From assembly GCA_038496445.1 (NCBI GenBank), contig JALMLS010000466.1:62001-126000 (forward strand): 64,000 nt of DNA, read 5' to 3'. Made by a program: the position numbers and the translations under genes. The stretch comes from Trichosphaerium sp. ATCC 40318. Its lineage: Eukaryota > Protista > Tubulinea. Every line of letters starts with the position of its first letter. The first letter of the stretch is position 1. Shown here one piece after another: positions 15,855-27,467 of the stretch. Under the pieces are notes generated by a model. That model made no database searches. It was not told the origin of the DNA and worked only from the letters and a program-made list of their open reading frames with translations.

Positions 15855-15971
15855 ACTGTTTACATTGTTGGTATACGTTGAATAGAATAGTTGCAAATGA
15901 CAGAGACAGAGAAGCCAACAAAGCTTAAATTCTAGTACGCCTTAGTCAAATTTCGCTAATAAATTTCAGCA
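15855..15971. promoter_or_regulatory. Probable bidirectional promoter (~117 bp between divergent ATGs)
   Basis: Head-to-head starts at 15854(-) and 15972(+). Similar compact divergent pairs occur at 26241/26423 and 41209/41354. No specific element was identified. Confidence 0.4.
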
Positions 15972-18140
15972 ATGGCAACTTGGCGTGAAAGAGAAGCGTC
16001 TAAAATAGATGTTGAGGCGTTATGGAAAGAAGAAAGCGAGATGTCTTTGCAAGAACGTCGTGAGCGCTACAACTGTGGGGATGACTTTACAACGCTCTCC
16101 GATGTAAAGCCATGGACACAATATTGCGTAGAAGATTTATGTATGTTAAAGCTCCTAAGTAGTGTATTTCCTTTTCGTTTAGAGTTGTTATGCTTTTATA
16201 ATACTCATTTACCATTTAGCTGGCTATGAAGGTATTCATGCCAAAGATGCTCAAGAATATATTGCCGCCTTTAACGCAAAGGATGACGGCGACGATACTG
16301 AGGAAACAGAAGACACAGACGATATTTACCAACCAGACGCCGAAATTAATCGCAAAGTCGCACATTGGCGTGGCAATAGTACGTTTCGCACTCAATAATA
16401 CACAATTCTTTTCTTGTCCTGTTATTTACAAAAAACGCTAGTCACTGCCATTGAAGTCGGCGCAATTGTAAATGCAGCCAACAAAGGATTGCTAGGAGGC
16501 GGTGGTGGTACGTTAACGTCTTATGGTACAATAATAACCTAATCACATTTCAGTCGACGGCGCTATTCACAGTGCAGCTGGTAATATGTTGTATCAGGAG
16601 TGCCTTCCACTCGGTGGCGCGGATACAGGTTCGCTAATTCTTCAAAAATCTCAATTATTCAATTTTTCATCCTAAAAGCGCTAGTTTCTCTTCCCTTGTC
16701 ATATTTTGCGCTCTTTTATATCCCATACATTGCTAACAGAGTTAATTAGGCGAAACAAAGATAACTCGCGGTTATAACTTGCCTGCCGAATGTGCGAGAC
16801 ATTTTTTTCTCTTTTTTTTTTTGTTTGATCGTTTTGGTGGTTTTTTGCCTTATTACTGTTTCAAGATGTTCTTCATACCGTTGGACCTATTGGAGAAAAC
16901 ACAGAAAAGCTAAGGAGTTGTTATTTGACATGCTTAGAGCTCGTTAAGAAGCACAATATCCGATCTGTCTGTTTTTGTGGCATTTCTACAGGCACGCTTA
17001 GAATTGTCTTTGTTTTGAAGTGCTTATGGTGTTAAACTAGGTATATACTCATACCCATTGTACGCTGCAAGTCACGTCGCTCTAAAGACTATTCGCGAAT
17101 GGATGGAAGTACCTGAGAACAGAGATGCTGTACGTTAACATTTTTTTTCCCGGATTTTTGAAAAAAATCTAATGTTCCTGCTCTTCTTTTGTGCTAACTC
17201 TTTGAGTAGGTTGATATGGTTATTGTATGCACATATTTACCAAAAGAGAAGATATGTTATGACAAGTTGTTCCCAACATACTTCCCACCATGCCCAGATC
17301 CAGGATTTGAAGTACGCTGAATAAAATTTATTTTTGAACACAAGTCTCGGTGTTAATCACTATTCTAGGACTATTGGTCTGCTGCTTGTAAGAGATTTGA
17401 TGCTGAAGATGTACGTAACGCTCTCGTATATTTATTGCTTGTTTCTTAGCGTTTATTAGGATGAAGGTACAATTGAAGAAACAGGCATGACTACACCTTT
17501 GTATTATTATATTTTTCCTATTTTGTTGGCTTTTAGCGCTTTCGCAGCTTGTAGAAATGGGTTGTATACTAGCAAATAACTCTTTATAAACGAAAAAAGT
17601 TCTTAAAGACGCTCCATGTTGTTCGTTAACGTATTTTATTTCAGCTGACGAAGAGGTTGAAGCAGAACCACCAAGACCTAAAGGCGCTAAGCTTGTTACC
17701 TTGAAGATTCACTACAAGACAATGGTTGGCTGGAATATTTATGCTAAGGGTACTTTTGATGGATCTAATGATTGGAAGAAGAACCAACTCAAGTGGGAAG
17801 AAGGTATGGCTAAAAAAACGAGCGACTGTGAAATTTTCTTCGTTTTTTTTTGAAAGAGCGCAATGTCAGTTGAAGTGGTTTTTCTTCGACGAGACTGACT
17901 CTGGTAGGCCACTATTGGACTACAAAGATCATGGTACCAGCTCAAGTACAAAGCATAGAGTACAAGTATTTGATACAAAATGATGAAAACGGAGAGGTAC
18001 GGAGAAAGGTGTTGGTGTTTTTGTCACAAGGATTTATGTTTATTTTTGCTTCTTAGGTTTATTGGGAAGGATGTGATAACCGAAAAATTAAGATTGAGAA
18101 CCCTGACACCTACCTCCTACAACACTGGGGCATTAATTAG
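15972..18140 (+). CDS. MacroD-type ADP-ribose glycohydrolase fused to a C-terminal CBM20 starch/glycogen-binding domain
   Basis: Macrodomain: AIVNAANKGLLGGGGVDGAIHSAAG, GETKITRGYNLPA, VLHTVGP, CFCGISTGIYSYP. The C-terminal exons give LKIHYKTMVGWNIYAKG..NDW..QLKWEEGHYW..IEYKYLI..VYWEGCDNR, matching the CBM20 pattern. Confidence 0.85.
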
Positions 18141-18801
18141 TATGTTTATAGTAGTGTAAGCGGTGTATGCTAATTTTACGTCTTGCAAACGAATATACAT
18201 TATTTCTCACGTTTTTTTTTTTTTCAATATCCCATGCGATCACGTGCGCCATGAATTTGTTGTGAGTTGCCAGGTTTTTTTTTTCTTTTTTTAGCTCTAT
18301 TCCCTTCTTTGATTGAAAAGGCTACGTAGTCAGCGTTTAGTTCTGCACATCGTTGGAAGCTGCGTGAGTATTTGTGATTTAGGTATAGTACAGTAGTTAG
18401 CGATGGGATTGTTGGCGTCGGCAAGTGGGGCTAACGGCCCATAACAAGCAATAGACATCGTTGGATGTGAGGAACTTAGAAACTACGTGCAGGCATCAAA
18501 AACTGCTGTACCTTTTTTTTGTAAAGCTGCTAGTTTCGACATTACTGTAGGTTCTATTGCATGGTAATGTAGTTTTTTACGTGAATTAATATAAAGAGTT
18601 TGCTAGCCACAGAGTCTCCCAATACGAGGTCTTGTTTACAGGGGTAAAAATTCGCCCCGAGACGGCCAAAAACCCCGAAAAATATGGAACAACAATAGTT
18701 CTTAGAGGTACTACTTTTAGTTGCCTAAAAACTACAAAGTGCATAGCGTACACAACCTCAAATAGCCATAATCTCCGAATACAAACAAGGGTCGCAACAC
18801 A

Positions 18802-21800
18802 ATGGCACAAATATTTGTGAGTGGCCTTGACGGTGACTGTATTGCTATAAACGCTGATCATTCAGGTACATAAAATTTAAACTTTTTAGACGGAGGTGGA
18901 CAACAACATCTAATGTTTCGTAGAGTCTATTCAGAGCCTCAAGAAGTCTATCCACGCTCGGCTAGGTAAGTTACTTTCACGTGATAATACGGAACATTGT
19001 TGACGGTACTCAGGCATAACTCCGGAGAATCAGACTTTAGAGTTTGGCGGAAGAACTCTTGTGAACTACAAGTCCGTGGGATACTATGGGATGAAGTCCG
19101 GATGTACTGTGAGTCTATCAACTCCATTGAAAGGAGGTAAACATCAATACCAAATTAAGAATTATCGCTGACGTATTTTTAGGTATGATGCATAGAGAAC
19201 GAATGTCGTCTTCTCAAAAAGTATTTGCTATCACCATGTCATGCCTTGCAATCCTTTCTGTGTGTGCTTTGGTTGCTACGCTTTCTATACTCTATGTGGG
19301 AAATACGGACGCCAACACGAACACGAACACGAACACTCCTTATACAACCACCAAGCGATCTACCTTACAAGCTACGGTTGATCCCCAAATCGAAGAACTA
19401 CAGAACAAACTCGCTGCTCTTGAAAGCCGAACGATTTTACTGGAAGCTGCAAGTCCTGTACCAGGTCCAAGAGGTGCAAGAGGATACGATGGAATCCCTG
19501 GAAAGTGCACAGGTGTCCTTGGACACAGTGAAATCCAAGTCGGCCACATCTCTGGTGGGTGGAGGTATTACATGTCTGGTGATGTTTATCAAGTACGTTC
19601 TTTTGTGAGTTTTAAGCTGCTCTTTTTACTAAAAGTCTGTTACAGCCAATGGAACCTATTAACGCAAAGGTTGGTGATCACCTTATCTTTCACAACTCAA
19701 AAAATGGCAATGTTGATTTATGGCAAATGTACGATGAGCAAGATTGGATTAACTGCAATGACACAACTGGTAATGCGACACGCCTCCAAGATGGTGTTCC
19801 TCTGCGAAGTGAAGAATTCGTATACGAAGTAACCGAAGAAGATCTTGAAGCCGGCACTCTTTACTTTGCGTGCCTTGGAAATGTTGCTCATAGAAACTTT
19901 TGTGCATCTCGATATGTCAAAATCAAAGTGACAGTTTCGGATTTTGTCGAAGCTTTTATTACAACAGTTGATAATGAAGTCATCGAAGGGCATACTCAGG
20001 CTATCGTAGAACTCAGAGCTATCATCTCACAGCTCTCTCAGACCATCATTCTTCAACAAGTAACACATGAGCAACGTGTACGTTCAGAAGGTGGGTCAGG
20101 TATCACTGTAGGAAGGGGATACTCTCAAGGACTACAAAGTTATCACGACGGAACTTTTGGACAAAACGCTATCATGAACATTCATAACCACGCTAATAAT
20201 CAACGTACAATGGGTATGGGAGAGATTCAAGCTGTATTAAACGGTGTTGAGTTTCAAACACGTCACAACGATTATACTCTGGCCAAACCTTGCTTTAACG
20301 ATACTACATATCATTGTACTGAGACTGTAGACTTCCCTGAAGTACCTCCGGCTGTTCTAAACCTTCCAGTGGATGAACAAGTCGCTGAAATGCAAGCTTG
20401 GTTCAAAGCATGGAAAGATCAAGTACGTTTCTTTCTTTTTATTTTTGGCGTTTGTTTTGTTTGTTTTGACATTCTGCTTTTAGGATTGGAGTGTTAGGGA
20501 TTATAGGCCTTACTTTAGACCTGTTTTGACATACCTCGAAGGAGCTTGGATTAAAGATACAGGTGATATCGATGAACCTTTCAATTCAGACAGACATTTT
20601 ATTGATGCTGAGAATTGGCGTGAACTTCACGATAAATACAGATTCTTGTTTAATTCTGGTAGAAAAAACAACGCTGAGAATGTTCCATACTTACCAGGTA
20701 ATTATCAAATTCCCTCATAATCACGTGATTCTGGTTGAACTAACACCTTTTAAAGCTAGTATTCGTAATCTTATCAACGACTCTGTTCCAGAGATTGCAA
20801 ACTGGGAATATAGGTATGTTTGTAATCACGTGTTGGTTTTTACCTTTCCAGTACTTTTATTGACTTTGTTCTTATTTTTATTGTAGGATACTTGTAGCAC
20901 CTATTGGTCATGATATTCCAACATCTAAATTCAGAATTCATCGCGATTTACATAAGCAATTATACGCAACTCCGCTTAAAGTTGAAGAAATGCAATATTC
21001 GAGGCGTGCACGTTGGGAGCTAAATCCAGCACTAAACAATGATGGTACAGTACCACAACCGCAATTTGTTAATGATACTGTACCATGGGAAGAAGGATAC
21101 ATGACCAGAGGCTATCTAGACGTACTTATGGAGGTACACACCACGAAAGTGATTCATCATTTTATTAACTTTTTTGCTTTTAGGGAGTTCCAGGTAAAGA
21201 CAACTATGGCGCTTTCTTTCCAGACGTATTTGAAGGAGCTAAAGCAAAACAATTCTCCAATAGCGCTGTATCGATGAACGCTGCTCATTATTCAAGATAC
21301 TATAAGGTTACAGATAAAGATGCTATGGGCGTAAACAACAGAAGAAGAGGATTTAATGATGCTTACTTATGGACCGCACATACCACACAAGAGAAAGTTG
21401 TTGCTCTTTCTGTTGAAGACAAATTTTGTGATAACTCACAGCCTGATTGCGAAAATACTGCTGAGTATGGAAAACGAAGAAAGCAGAGATGGACATACGC
21501 TATTCCTCTCGGTGAGAAGAACTTCACTTTTTTTTCGTCATTACTTTTCTTGATTTATTCTTATGTTCTTTTAGAAATCGTTTATTTGACGCCTCTCACC
21601 AAATGGAATCCCTACAACATTACTTACCACGGAGATAAGTCTGATATTCCAATATTGCCTACAGGACAAAGAGATGGCACGCCGGATCAGAATGGATGCG
21701 ACAGCCGAGCAGATCAAGCATTTAATGGCACAAACCGAAAGCTGTATTACAGAACACCTAAGGAGTTCTTTGCTTCCAATGATGAGAATCGAGACCCTGC

Positions 21801-22397
21801 AGACACTTCTGCTGTTGGTGGCGTATGTGTTTTGGATCAGGCTGGAGTGCCTCGTCGAGTTGAGGCTTCAGGACATTGGATTGTTTTCCCAGAAATCGGA
21901 GGAGGCGTCGGACAAGTCAGGTAATTGAATCAAACATTTGTGCATTTTTTTTTCCCTACTAACACTATCTTAGGCAAAGATACCCTATTCCACCTATTCA
22001 CGCTAGTGGTAGTACAACATGGAAGGAACTAGAAGCTCTAAAGGATATCCTTATATCAAGTTATGACTACGAAAATGACCAGGCAGGAAAATTCGGAGAT
22101 AGTAGAGATTTAGAAAATGGATTTACTCTTAGTTTGAGAGGAGGTGGACATGACCATGACTTTGTTGTTAAATCTTCGAAGGTTAGACAATGGGTTGAAA
22201 GTAATGATTCGAGTACATTAACATTTACAACTGAAAAAAGAAACAATCATCAACACAAGATTAAGCTCTCAAGAAGTAGACCTGATGCTTCATCCGAATA
22301 CACTTATACACTTGAATTATGCAAGTTTGATGGTGGTAATGACGCCTATACACCTGATAGTTGTTTGGACGGCCATAACGAAGTTGTCAGATTGTAG
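18802..22397 (+). CDS. Ubiquitin-like leader (ending LKGG) fused to a signal-anchored extracellular protein: coiled coil, short Gly-X-Y stretch, phytocyanin-like cupredoxin, large uncharacterised domain, His-rich C-terminus
   Basis: Exons 18802-18865, 18924-18965, 19014-19136 and 19183- splice in frame to MAQIFVSGLDG...LGITPENQTLEFGGRTL...VSLSTPLKGG|MMHRERM. They are followed by the TM VFAITMSCLAILSVCALVATLSILYV, GPRGARGYDGIPG, VGDHLIF..C..GTLYFAC..C..KIKVTV, and the stop TAG at 22395-22397. Confidence 0.85.
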
Positions 22398-23018
22398 ATA
22401 ATCTTCGTTTGTCTGAATGTGTTTAAATAGTATGTAAATAAAATTCTATGATCAAACTTTTGTTTCGCTGCTTGCTTGCTGTGTCCTTAATTTTGACCCT
22501 TAATTTACACCATTCTAGCCTATTACTATTTAGTAGATTAGTATTATAGTAACTTGTAGCTTGTGACATTCAGCATTTCGCGGTGAAATACAGCAAGTAC
22601 AAGAAGGTTTGCAAAAATGGCTTGTAATTGTTGTTATTTTTTTTTTGCAAAATACAAGAATGGAGTATTGTGCTTTGGAGTCTTGAAACTCGAATACACG
22701 CTGCGATGGTCAAATCATTCAGGAACACAAAATGCTAGAGGTTGCTACATAGCACTTCACAGTAGAAAAGTTGCTTGCGCATACCAGTTCTTAAATCCTC
22801 ACAAAGTATTCGTGATTGCTTCCTCCCGCTGCTGTTTGTTTATTACTAATGCATGCATGTAGTCTCATTCCTCACAATCGCACAACTAGGTCAAACCTGG
22901 AACAAAAAGTGCATCTGTACAAAATAGTCTTTTTTTTTACAAATATACAGCTATTTATTCAATCACACGTGCTCTTGAGAGGAGGGGTTTCACCTTGGCT
23001 CTGTTATCACATCTACAC

Positions 23019-26000
23019 CTATGTTTCTTTATCCGGTGTGCCTTCTTTAACCTCCTTCAACTGGCTTTCTAACTGAGCATTCCTTTCCTTCAGCTTTTGT
23101 AGCTCTTTTTTCACGTCCTCACCAGGGTCAGTAAGTTGTGATACAGTTCTTCTTGTAATAGTATAACTCCCTGATCTATCGCTTCGTTTTAACTCCTCGT
23201 CACTCATTGTCATGTATACCATACGTGGTACAAGGAGTGACATAATAGAAATAAAAGGTCCAAGAATGAGACATATAGATCGAAGAATAAACGCAATTTC
23301 GCGATGTTGTGCTCCAAATATCTACCAGTAAATATGAGTATCGATATCCACAAAACCGTGTGATGATATTAAACGTACTTGAATGATGATAATGATGACA
23401 ATAAAGAATGTGAGCGTATAAACAGCAAACCCAATAGATCTAAAAAAAAAAAGTTAAATCAATTTTCGCGTGTACACAAGCTAAGTATCAGACACTTACT
23501 TTGATTCATTGTATAGTATAGCTTTTAGTTTCCATATTCTTATCACCCAGTATATACCATAAGCTAACACACCAGCATTGAATACCATTAGAATTACAAG
23601 AAATATTAAATCTTTTGTTGTATTCTGACAAGCAATGAAGTCATCTGAACGAATAAACGGTTCTGCTTCGTTCAGCTCAGAACGACCTGTACTTATCGCT
23701 GTCCATAAAGTTAAAATAACAACCTCAACAGCAACAACAGCAGTAACAATTGGTATGATCATCATGTTGGTCACTTTAAAAACTTCCAAACTTTTTTCAA
23801 GGAAGATTTGTCCTATTCTGTATATTCTCGCAAACAAAGCGCCATATGTAAGCTACAAGATGATTAACAGCTAGATATTAAAAGCCCTAGTACCCCAAAC
23901 CCAACTGCTAGTAACCATCTATGGACATTACAATGAAGATCATCCGTGTGTAGTGTCCAAAAAAAGACAGAACAATACATAAGAATACTGCCGAACTACG
24001 ACACCATGTTAAGTTTTACTTCGAACTAGTCGAATTGTAGACGTACGAGAGTAAGGACAACGAAAAGAGGTTGGGCAGCGCGAATAACTTTATGTTGTCT
24101 ATAAGCTAGTACCCAAACCATAAGACCAGCAGAAATAAGTATAGCAACACCAACGAGTGCCATCATCACTCTCTCGCTCGTAAATTCTACAATTGTAAAT
24201 ACCGGTTGATATCACGTTTCCGTTGAAAACACGTACTGTACCAGCCATAAGTAGTATGTCTCTCACTCCATTTTGGTACAGGGTAAACGAACTGTTGGGT
24301 TATAGCAAATAGGGGAGCTACTATTTGATACACAAAGTCATCATCAATCTGAAACGACAGCGCGTTTGTGCCAAGGTTCTCCCCGAATTGATCAAACGTG
24401 AATTCACCTGAGAACCCATTTATTTTCATAGCATTGATGGCTTTTTGAATATCATCTGCGTCTAGTGAGCTAAAAGAAAAAAGAATAAGACAAGAGACTG
24501 GCATTTGAAAAGAATGAAAAAAATTGTCACGTGCTTAGCAGTTTCGAGTGCGTATTGAGTAATATATCCCAATGAATACCCAATCATACCGCTATTACCA
24601 GGTTCGTATCCATAACGATCAGCGAACCTGTTATTGAACAGAAGTGCTGACGGTGTTGTTCCATTACTGACAAAGTGGTGATAGCGTGTTGTATTTGATT
24701 TTTCATCATTAGCCTCACCACGGAGCCTTTTGTCCCACTATAACCAGTAAGTAAGTAAGACTAAATAACCAATCAAGAAGATTCTTACCAGTAAACCAGT
24801 TGATACAACGTATTTAGCAGCATCACCGATATTAGCACGAACCGCAGAGGGAAGAATCAAACATGGATTTGAAATTAAGTACGCCTGTGACATACGTTAA
24901 GTAATGTTGACAAAAGCATAACGCAAGATAAATGAGAAGGTAGAATACCTTTGCGTTAAAGTCCATTTTTCTAGCTGTCTTAAGAAAAGCGCCACAAGAG
25001 AAAAAACTTCCAGAAAGGACAACATCTGTTGGAGATATAAAGTGTTAGTTCGAAATCAATGACAAAAAAAAACTTCATCTAACCACGTGCCTGGTTGAAT
25101 CTCTTTTAGTTCAGTTATCAATTCATCTATATCAGGTTGTACAAGTGTTGCATTCGGAGAGAACTTAATTACTTTAGTATATACGAGCTCCATCCCTATA
25201 AACTGTATAGCACGAAGAGCTCCATCTGCAACTGAAGCTGTGAACGAATTATCTAAAATAGAATAAATCAAACTATTCATTCATTACCCTATTTTAGAAT
25301 AGTACCTTCCCAAAATACAGCAATTGTCTTTGCATTGTGTACTTGTAGTAAATTCAAAGTTTCTGTAAAAAACTTTGATGTAGGAGTAATAAGGCTTGTA
25401 GCATATGTAAGCCTACGACCAAACGGACTTGTACAAGGAGGAAGCATCTTATCATCGCAAATATATATCTCAGGGGATGATGATGCAGCTAAACAAAAGG
25501 GTCAATGTAAGAACTTACATTGGTCACGTGTGTATCCAAATATGATTCACAAGTTGAACTACGCACGTAGTAAAACGTTAACTCCAGCCTCGTTAGCCAC
25601 GAGAGCACTTGTAAGTCCCAAAAAAGATGATACAGGCTACAGAATAAATCCGTCAGAAGGACAAAGACTAACAATAAAAAAGAAGTTAACTGCATACAGC
25701 AAAAATAAGATCGACATTTTCTTCTGTTATAAGCGACATAGTCGCATTTGCTGAGGCCTCACCATTATTTGCTACGCGAAACGAGGTGTTAGAACGAAAA
25801 CGACAAAAAAGCTCCCGAAAGGCTATTTTCAGTTTGAAGCTTCTTAAAACGCTCTAAAAGCGTAGTTTCTAGTAACTCCGTTTGTTTTAGCGTACTTATT
25901 CCTCTTTCTATTATTTCCACTGTGTAAAATGTGCCGTTAATGTTAAAACCTCCTCTAGCATTAACCTAATGCGTAGAAAATAAGCATTGATGTAAAACCA

Positions 26001-26241
26001 GATGAGTTTATATTAATGTAAACTGTAAAACGAGAAATTGATTTAAAAAAAGATCAACTTGTATTTCAATGTCACATACCGTATCCTTCCACATTTGTTG
26101 GCCATCTCGTACGAGAGCACTTGTTCTTACTTGTCCGCCTTCTGTCGGGTATATATTCCCAATTCTAAATACAGGTTGTTGTTGAGCCCAGCAAGCAACT
26201 CCGAAAGCACATAGAGCCAATATAAACAAGTTGTGATGCAT
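23019..26241 (-). CDS. Class C (GABA-B/Grl-like) GPCR with an N-terminal periplasmic-binding-protein-like Venus flytrap domain
   Basis: Signal peptide MHHNLFILALCAFGVACWA; VFT motifs (EENVDLIFAP, GFSGEFTFDQFGEN); 7TM motifs HKVIRAAQPLF, YGALFARIYRIGQIF, LYNESK; C-terminal coiled coil ELQKLKERNAQLESQLKEVK. Confidence 0.88.
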
Positions 26242-26422
26242 CTGTTATTAAAATAGAAGTACAGTTGATATGTGACTTGTGGTAACTATAAAGGTGCAAC
26301 AGAGGTTTCAACCGAAAACTAAACAGGTTTTGCTTTTTGCCAGAAAATAAAGCAGGTAACACGCACTTAACTTAAATGACTTAAAACGATATGACAGTTT
26401 GCCTTCTTTTTCCGTCTTTGCC

Positions 26423-27467
26423 ATGTCACAATCATCCCAAGAAACCAAAACCTCTTCATTTACTAAAATACTAGTTACTGGTAGCTCTGGTTACCTAGGA
26501 GCTCATCTTGTTGGAGTTTTACAGCAAAGAAACAGCTACATTGTTGTAGGCGTTGATATAGTCCCAAGTGATACCACAACTGTCGTTGGTTCTTTTGGTG
26601 ATGCCGAGCTTATTCGTAAAACGCTAGAAAAATATAAAATCGAAGCTATTCTCCACGTGGGTGGGTTACACAAGCCAAACATAAAGAATCATACAAAACA
26701 GGATTTCATAGACGTTAACGTCAGTGGTACACTATGTCTGCTTCAAGAGGCTGTTCGTTGTGGCACTGTACGTTCGTTCGTCTTTACTAGTTCCACGAGC
26801 ACCTTTGGCATGGCTCTTCATCCAACCAGCGACGATCAAGATACTATATGGATAGATGAGACAGTACAACCAATACCAAAGAACATCTATGGTAAAGAAT
26901 AGTTAGAGAATTTTCTTCTTTATTTCCTTCCCATTGAAAAAGAAATGATTTTTTCTTACCTTGTTGTTTTTTGTAGGTGTTTCAAAGCTTGCTGCTGAGA
27001 ACCTTTGTAAACTTATATCTTCTCAGAATGATAAATTTGATGTGGTCGTGTTAAGGACATCTCGTTTTTTCCCTGAAGATGACGACAACCCTAAGAGAGT
27101 TACCAAGTTTGGCGATGCTAATTTGAAAACCAACGAAATGCTTCATCGTCGGATTGCTCTTGAGGATGTTGGCGCAGCTCACTTGGCAGCTTTAGAAGCG
27201 TCTCCTAGATTAGGATACAAGATTTATATATTGAGTGCGACAACACCTTTCACTAGAGCAGATGTAAGCCAGTTGAGGTATAACTCTATAGATGTTGCAA
27301 GAAGAATTTTTAATAATCTCGATACAATCTACGCCGAAAAACAGTGGTGTTTTGAAGGGTATTCTATTGAAAGAGTTTATGATAATTCACTAATACTAAA
27401 AGAAATACCTGAATGGAAGCCAAAACACTCGTTCAAGACTTGTCTTGAAGGAAAGACAACTTTCTAA
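26423..27467 (+). CDS. NAD(P)-dependent epimerase/dehydratase (extended SDR), single intron
   Basis: ILVTGSSGYLG; DVNVSGT; FVFTSSTSTFG; the YxxxK motif (NIYG|VSK) is split by the intron at ~26892-26997; LRTSRFFPEDD. Confidence 0.9.

Follow-up and report, generated by a model that had tools for sequence, protein, structure and literature searches.

A predicted fusion of a ubiquitin-like leader ending in di-glycine to a signal-anchored membrane glycoprotein in Trichosphaerium

Introduction

Does a gene of Trichosphaerium sp. ATCC 40318 fuse a ubiquitin-like domain (UBL) that ends in di-glycine (GG) directly to a signal-anchored membrane protein, and if so, is that UBL a leader that is clipped off? 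The locus that raises this question lies at 18802-22397 on the plus strand of a 64,000-nucleotide (nt) stretch of contig JALMLS010000466.1; we call the whole stretch the window and count all positions in it. Between 18400 and 22600 the DNA is eukaryotic and has short introns of the GT..AG type, and its splice signals and reading frames suggest that this part probably holds a single fusion gene of 11 exons encoding 1010 amino acids (aa). Whether the protein is both made in this form and then cleaved after its Gly77 is, in our estimate, evenly balanced.

A ubiquitin-like domain encoded by three small exons

A prior analysis made from the DNA letters alone (the sequence-only reading) had noticed three small exons, missed by the track of open reading frames (ORFs), that together encode a 77-aa UBL. 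Its translation was reproduced exactly, and the three leader exons are indeed absent from the ORF list, which holds frames of at least 40 aa. The start codon of the gene would be ATG 18802, which stands in a good context (ACAATGG) and has an in-frame TAA upstream at 18769.

The domain itself proved to be real. Against the Pfam ubiquitin family (PF00240) the leader scored 52.4 bits (cut-off 25.4; E 4.5e-14), with aa 4-71 lying on profile positions 1-68 of 72, and phmmer placed aa 3-77 without a gap on ubiquitin 2-76, the terminal GG over G75-G76. Identity to ubiquitin is 25/75 (33%), and among the ubiquitin sites checked only L8 and K27 are conserved, the changes being R42T, I44E, K48R, K63S, H68S, V70S and R72P. 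By these comparisons the leader is a UBL and not ubiquitin proper. Its tail reads T-P-L-K-G-G and preserves the Leu-X-Gly-Gly (LXGG) motif. An AlphaFold2 single-sequence model of the domain was unreliable, with a mean predicted local distance difference test score (pLDDT) of 44; the order of its elements, beta-beta-alpha-beta-beta, fits a beta-grasp fold.

Splice evidence for one fusion gene

What would place the UBL on the membrane protein is candidate intron 3 (19137-19182; Table 1). As the sequence-only reading had it, all three leader introns are in phase 1 and the last Gly codon is split: Gly76 is encoded by GGA (19133-19135), and Gly77 by G (19136) together with GT (19183-19184). Two Met codons (19185-19190) follow directly after Gly77 in the spliced frame, and 12 residues further on there is a transmembrane helix (19221-19298), again as described before. 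The downstream frame, that of exon 4, is closed by TGA 19128 and therefore has no other start.

In its composition and its signals the candidate resembles the gene's other nine introns. The G+C fraction of 19137-19182 is 0.28, compared with 0.27-0.40 in those nine introns and 0.37-0.50 in exons; its branch, CTGAC, stands 11 nt from the AG, a spacing that it shares with the others; and no polypyrimidine acceptor in the region is better than its own. Donor 19137 is the best within reach of acceptor 19182, and before 19330 there is no strong acceptor other than 19182. For scoring, a loose intron pattern was replaced by a position-weight model comprising donor, branch and acceptor matrices, which was trained on 181 other ORF-joining candidate introns with 19137-19182 left out. 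When scored in this way the candidate reached 21.4 bits (training median, 17.7), which puts it between the 75th and 90th percentile; of the gene's nine other introns, five score lower. Pairs with at least this score numbered 86 in the real window as against about 4.8 per strand in composition-preserving shuffles, and 30 of 38160 trials on shuffled sequence produced a frame-joining pair equally good in the required geometry (about 8e-4); if all high-scoring pairs of the real window are counted as noise, the chance is about 0.01. Since the splice score is above the median and the chance of a match in shuffles is low, one fusion gene is favoured, and the joining of the UBL to a signal-anchored protein by a splice from 19136 to 19183, as postulated by the sequence-only reading, is supported in silico by signals, score and frame.

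Past candidate intron 3 the model was extended by seven more introns to a stop at 22395-22397. Exons 5-11 (19646..22397, plus strand) encode a cupredoxin-like domain and a conserved, His-rich ectodomain of ~650 aa, and are validated by the homologue P0004, which is collinear with residues 218-1009 at 41% identity. The stalk and collagen-like part of exon 4 matches the N-terminal stalk of another homologue, P0003 (E 1e-7), and exon 4 is therefore part of the same gene as the ectodomain.

A predicted type II membrane glycoprotein as partner

The spliced order is UBL-GG-Met-linker-transmembrane segment-ectodomain. Exon 4 opens with a linker (19185-19220; Met-Met-His-Arg-Glu-Arg...) and continues through the transmembrane segment into an Asn/Thr-rich stalk, with a coiled coil and a short collagen-like stub at about 19374-19502. 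The sole hydrophobic segment of the 1010-aa model is that at aa ~90-115, and 19-residue windows with a hydropathy above 1.6 start at aa 88-100 only. It is flanked by HRER..K on its N-terminal side and by D on its C-terminal side, and beyond it there are 8 NxS/T sequons and 12 Cys. This is the layout of a type II signal-anchor membrane glycoprotein, which we predict the partner to be.

An exhaustive phmmer search with exon 5 yielded at least 434 homologues at E <= 1e-3, the best of them 39-54% identical. The named members, which come from cnidarians, molluscs and a nemertean, are labelled "uncharacterized", and others come from protist transcriptomes; the partner thus appears to belong to an uncharacterised eukaryotic family of type II or secreted proteins. 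A Pfam scan of the partner exons gave no significant match, and in relatives of the partner Pfam marked only collagen or plastocyanin-like pieces. The AlphaFold2 model of P0004, taken as family representative, has a pLDDT of 82. Its N-domain resembles ephrins and phytocyanins (cupredoxin fold), which was the sole Foldseek match in the PDB; the ~650-residue core gave no Foldseek match there, and in the AlphaFold database it matched only uncharacterised animal proteins and, weakly and at low template-modelling score, phage tail-fibre proteins. Near-invariant motifs of the core are IHNHA, TRHNDY, NWEYRI, PLEI.Y..PL..WNPYN and a C-terminal H.H...H.H...C.DGH.

The N-termini of the homologues bear on how the leader arose. 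The homologues open either on a short tail and the same transmembrane segment or on a signal peptide. Among 109 full-length homologues, 34 begin with a hydrophobic segment and 11 more have tails of 13-75 residues before a transmembrane segment, and P0001, P0003, P0027, P0074 and P0123 share the type II layout. P0003 starts with a Met, 11 residues, a transmembrane segment and a stalk, exactly as the partner does from Met78, suggesting that the ancestral protein began at exon 4 and that the UBL is an add-on.

Distribution of the leader and evidence against a cleaved fusion

The UBL was found by phmmer in none of 188 partner homologues, and by tblastn upstream of none of five homologue loci. The leader therefore appears to be a lineage-specific addition and, since all leader introns are in phase 1, one made by exon shuffling.

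The same counts head a series of results that weigh against a fusion that is made and cleaved. As no homologue or locus among those checked carries the UBL, conservation supports neither the fusion nor the GG. A protein of the same species or of a close relative was not found in searches with the UBL (42-135 aa), with an exon-piece profile (528-1680 aa), with the exon-4 ORF (118-376 aa) or in the exhaustive phmmer search with exon 5, none of which gave anything closer than 46% identity, and scans of metagenomes had no match to either exon 4 or the UBL. At the junction itself, donor 19137 taken alone is of only median strength (6.6 bits), and decoy GTs of similar score lie nearby; the loose pattern GTR...YTRAY...YAG is common by chance, with about 670 matches on each strand whether the sequence is real or shuffled; and a strong acceptor with a branch would suit trans-splicing as well. 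As for cleavage, general deubiquitinases (DUBs) may miss this UBL because the surface that they bind is altered (I44E, H68S, V70S, R42T, R72P), and the retention of both Gly in a domain of 33% identity is weak evidence of constraint.

A proposed removable leader, or a permanent domain

We propose the following course of events for the fusion protein. The UBL would emerge first and fold in the cytosol, and the transmembrane segment would be inserted co-translationally with its N-terminal side in (type II), leaving the UBL on the cytosolic face. This orientation is expected because of the flanking charges and of N-terminal folding, both of which influence signal anchors (PMC2139883). A UBL protease directed to LXGG, or a DUB, would then clip after Gly77. 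For each membrane protein one UBL would be set free, and the protein would again start, as its ancestor did, with MMHRER..., the beginning of a 12-residue basic linker whose first residue would be the former initiator Met of the partner. The UBL would in this way serve as a leader that is taken off, like those of FUBI-eS30 and ubiquitin-NiSOD, and not as a gate for targeting to the endoplasmic reticulum (ER).

Granted the fusion, we would expect cleavage after Gly77 with modest confidence, because of the analogy with FUBI-eS30, SDE2 and ubiquitin fusions and because the length, the register and LKGG have been kept. The P1' residue after LKGG is Met, which is permissive. LXGG is cut by proteases of the ubiquitin-specific protease (USP) fold, and LKGG is a known site of papain-like protease (PLpro) (PMC7854729); those natural fusions with an N-terminal UBL-GG that have been examined are processed (PMC8354635, PMC13572447).

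The same splice evidence would equally serve a fusion that is never cut. The UBL would then be a permanent cytosolic domain of a type II protein, as in HERP, TMUB1 or Usa1, and its role would be to offer a handle for docking or quality control, or simply to fix the N-in orientation by folding fast. That the patch for binding DUBs and readers has been lost (I44E, H68S, V70S, R72P) would fit such a domain, as would the effect of N-terminal folding on signal-anchor orientation described in PMC2139883, and cytosolic tails of up to ~75 aa are tolerated in homologues. Against this, ubiquitin length, register and LKGG are all retained, and the old initiator Met of the partner follows directly after them. 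Integral UBL domains, by comparison, usually have neither a terminal GG nor the exact length of ubiquitin. The exchange of I44 for Glu makes the usual UBL-binding partners unlikely too. Overall we regard an uncleaved fusion as credible but unlikely.

Two products from one locus as an alternative reading

The sequence could also be read as encoding two products. If 19137-19182 were not spliced, or not always, read-through would run from LKGG into KHQYQIKNYR and TGA 19169-19171, giving an 87-aa UBL precursor with a 10-aa tail; the membrane protein would start separately at ATG 19185, either from a promoter of its own inside the locus or as the second cistron of a unit that is operon-like or trans-spliced. 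Several observations would fit such an arrangement: the read-through frame retains the GG and is followed by a short tail and a stop, like many UBL precursors; the homologues begin exactly where exon 4 starts; and ATG-ATG stands 2 nt past the acceptor. Of the words sampled from 18500-20500, sequencing run X1 (perhaps labelled RNA) contained 45% and runs X3-X5 contained 37-38%. Exonic words amount to 57% if the UBL exons are left out and to 64% if they are counted; the shares in the runs fit spliced RNA and do not separate a fusion from two products.

The spacing of the locus speaks against two products. The read-through stop would lie 13 nt before ATG 19185, whereas neighbouring genes of the region are about 600 nt apart. 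Neither AATAAA nor ATTAAA occurs between the UBL and 20236, more than 1 kb past the read-through stop; the AATAAA at 22437 is the sole such signal past 18000 except for two ATTAAA within exons 5-6. In an mRNA that retained the intron, the stop would lie far upstream of seven exon junctions. Furthermore, the donor falls exactly at the GG codon and in the right phase, and no protein of 42-135 aa with the UBL sequence was found among 5.8 billion clusters.

We also looked for signs of a spliced leader. Acceptor scores at the two other start codons considered, a small sample, were 0.9-2.0 before ATG 18802 and 1.9 before ATG 15972, against 7.6 at 19182, and an Rfam scan of the window gave no family match and hence none to a spliced-leader RNA gene. 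The idea of a spliced leader or operon was set aside, as neither acceptors at these two starts nor an Rfam match supports it. Taken together, we consider two separate products to be distinctly improbable, and a single fusion gene remains the preferred reading.

The last proposal, also put forward by the sequence-only reading, was that DUB cleavage gates ER targeting and/or frees a new conjugatable modifier, and it fares worst: the GG is in register with ubiquitin and the UBL sits 12 residues ahead of the signal anchor, but a signal anchor works internally, being recognised as it emerges with nothing to expose, homologues carry cytosolic tails of 13-75 aa before the same transmembrane segment, a folded N-domain and flanking charges would merely favour the N-in orientation (PMC2139883), I44E, H68S, V70S and R72P argue against ubiquitin E1 and readers and R72P and I44E against E2 use as well, and the ORF lists of 17000-27000 hold no adjoining dedicated E1-like gene, so that we take it to be very improbable. 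The freed UBL could conceivably be conjugated, but R72P and I44E lend this no support. Equally remote, in our view, is a new, dedicated modifier that occurs nowhere but at the head of a surface glycoprotein, as its removable leader. A specific protease would release it at the cytosolic face of the ER, one UBL for every molecule inserted, and its conjugation or signalling would then couple secretory output to a cytosolic UBL pathway.

Gene structure and neighbouring genes

The coordinates of the gene are collected in Table 1.

Table 1. Features of the predicted fusion gene and its end signal (positions in the window)
Feature	Position	Strand	Description
Exon 1	18802..18865	+	start codon, UBL residues 1-21 and one further nt
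Intron 1	18866..18923	+	58 nt, phase 1, GTACAT..CTAAT..GTAG; splice model 20.2 bits
Exon 2	18924..18965	+	UBL residues 22-35; 42 nt, symmetric 1-1
Intron 2	18966..19013	+	48 nt, phase 1; splice model 19.4 bits
Exon 3	19014..19136	+	UBL residues 36-76 and first base of Gly77; ends ...CCA TTG AAA GGA G
Candidate intron 3	19137..19182	+	46 nt, phase 1; donor GAG/GTAAAC; acceptor TATTTTTAG/GT
Exon 4	19183..19592	+	last two bases of Gly77, MMHRER linker, transmembrane anchor, stalk, collagen-like stub
Exons 5-7	19646-20422, 20484-20697, 20756-20813	+	
Exons 8-11	20887-21133, 21184-21511, 21575-21920, 21974-22397 (stop included)	+	
AATAAA	22437..22442	+	40 nt past the final stop

With phase 1 common to all three leader introns, exon 2, exon 3 or both could be skipped in frame. 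A second candidate donor, likewise in frame and in phase 1, is present at 19104 (GATGTACTGTG; 6.2 bits, 79 nt to acceptor 19182), and its use would remove the last 11 residues of the UBL, LKGG included. The gene could therefore yield isoforms that have a cleavable UBL and others that lack it. Further downstream, the length of intron 9 (21512-21574, 63 nt) is divisible by three and the intron contains no stop in frame, and the ORF 21274-21924 reads through it; its retention would add 21 residues inside the conserved core without truncating the protein.

The ORF translations of 23019-26241 on the minus strand point to a multi-exon gene that converges on the fusion gene. These ORFs appear to encode several transmembrane helices and, upstream of them in the protein, a large extracellular domain of ligand-binding type, and the product may be a receptor resembling class C G-protein-coupled receptors. 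On the upstream side there is a macrodomain/CBM20 gene in which CTAAT...TTTCAG stands 2 nt before ATG 15972 (15950-15974); that acceptor has only 1.9 bits and is without a good donor within 110 nt, and the likeness to an intron in a 5' untranslated region is probably due to chance.

Significance and comparison with known systems

If the protein is both fused and cleaved, the locus would amount to a natural "ubiquitin-fusion technique" turned on a surface protein with a signal anchor: the cell would produce, 1:1 with a membrane glycoprotein, a diverged UBL tailed by LKGG and take it off on the cytosolic side. This would point to a UBL-specific protease in the organism, and would be a clean case of a UBL leader gained by exon shuffling. 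The locus also bears out the warning of Sibbald et al. that short upstream UBL exons escape ORF-based annotation (PMC6332867). Should there be two separate products instead, they would form an unusually tight gene pair, 13 nt apart, notable for the gene organisation of this genome.

HERP, TMUB1 and Usa1 share with the predicted leader fusion a cytosolic UBL on a membrane-anchored protein. They differ in that their UBLs have no terminal GG and are not leaders, and they are ER quality-control factors with other membrane topologies.

FUBI-eS30 (FAU) resembles it in its leader: there too a diverged UBL of ubiquitin length, about a third identical to ubiquitin and ending in GG, stands at the N-terminus of an unrelated protein within a single ORF. 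FUBI is removed from it by a specific USP, USP36 or USP16, as PMC8354635 and PMC10611586 report. FAU has a ribosomal protein of the cytosol as its partner, and its fusion has been conserved across the Holozoa, whereas the present partner is a predicted type II membrane glycoprotein, the fusion is in no homologue checked, and cleavage is only predicted. SDE2 likewise has an N-terminal UBL ending in GG, which a deubiquitinase cuts to expose a new functional N-terminus (PMC5131917 and PMC13572447). Unlike the present partner, SDE2 is nuclear and has no membrane segment, and its cleavage is coupled to PCNA/USP5.

Precedents for such a partner come from protists. The sequence-only reading had taken the partners of UBL-GG fusions to be cytosolic or nuclear, and this premise is too narrow: Sibbald et al. 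(2019) described ubiquitin at the N-terminus of integral membrane proteins, in Bigelowiella natans and 87 other species, and of NiSOD, actin and others, with the short ubiquitin part often missed by gene predictors (PMC6332867). The predicted Trichosphaerium gene resembles these fusions in having a non-ribosomal partner that may be an integral membrane protein, and in their patchy, lineage-specific occurrence (PMC6332867). The published cases carry near-canonical ubiquitin, often as poly- or partial units, on multi-pass membrane proteins of bacterial type (PMC6332867), whereas here a UBL of 33% identity with an altered I44 patch stands ahead of a single-pass anchor. We conclude that the locus is most likely a ubiquitin-fusion gene of an unusual kind for which there are precedents, and that what would be new in it is a strongly diverged UBL, joined through phase-1 exons to a single-pass type II glycoprotein, in one lineage.

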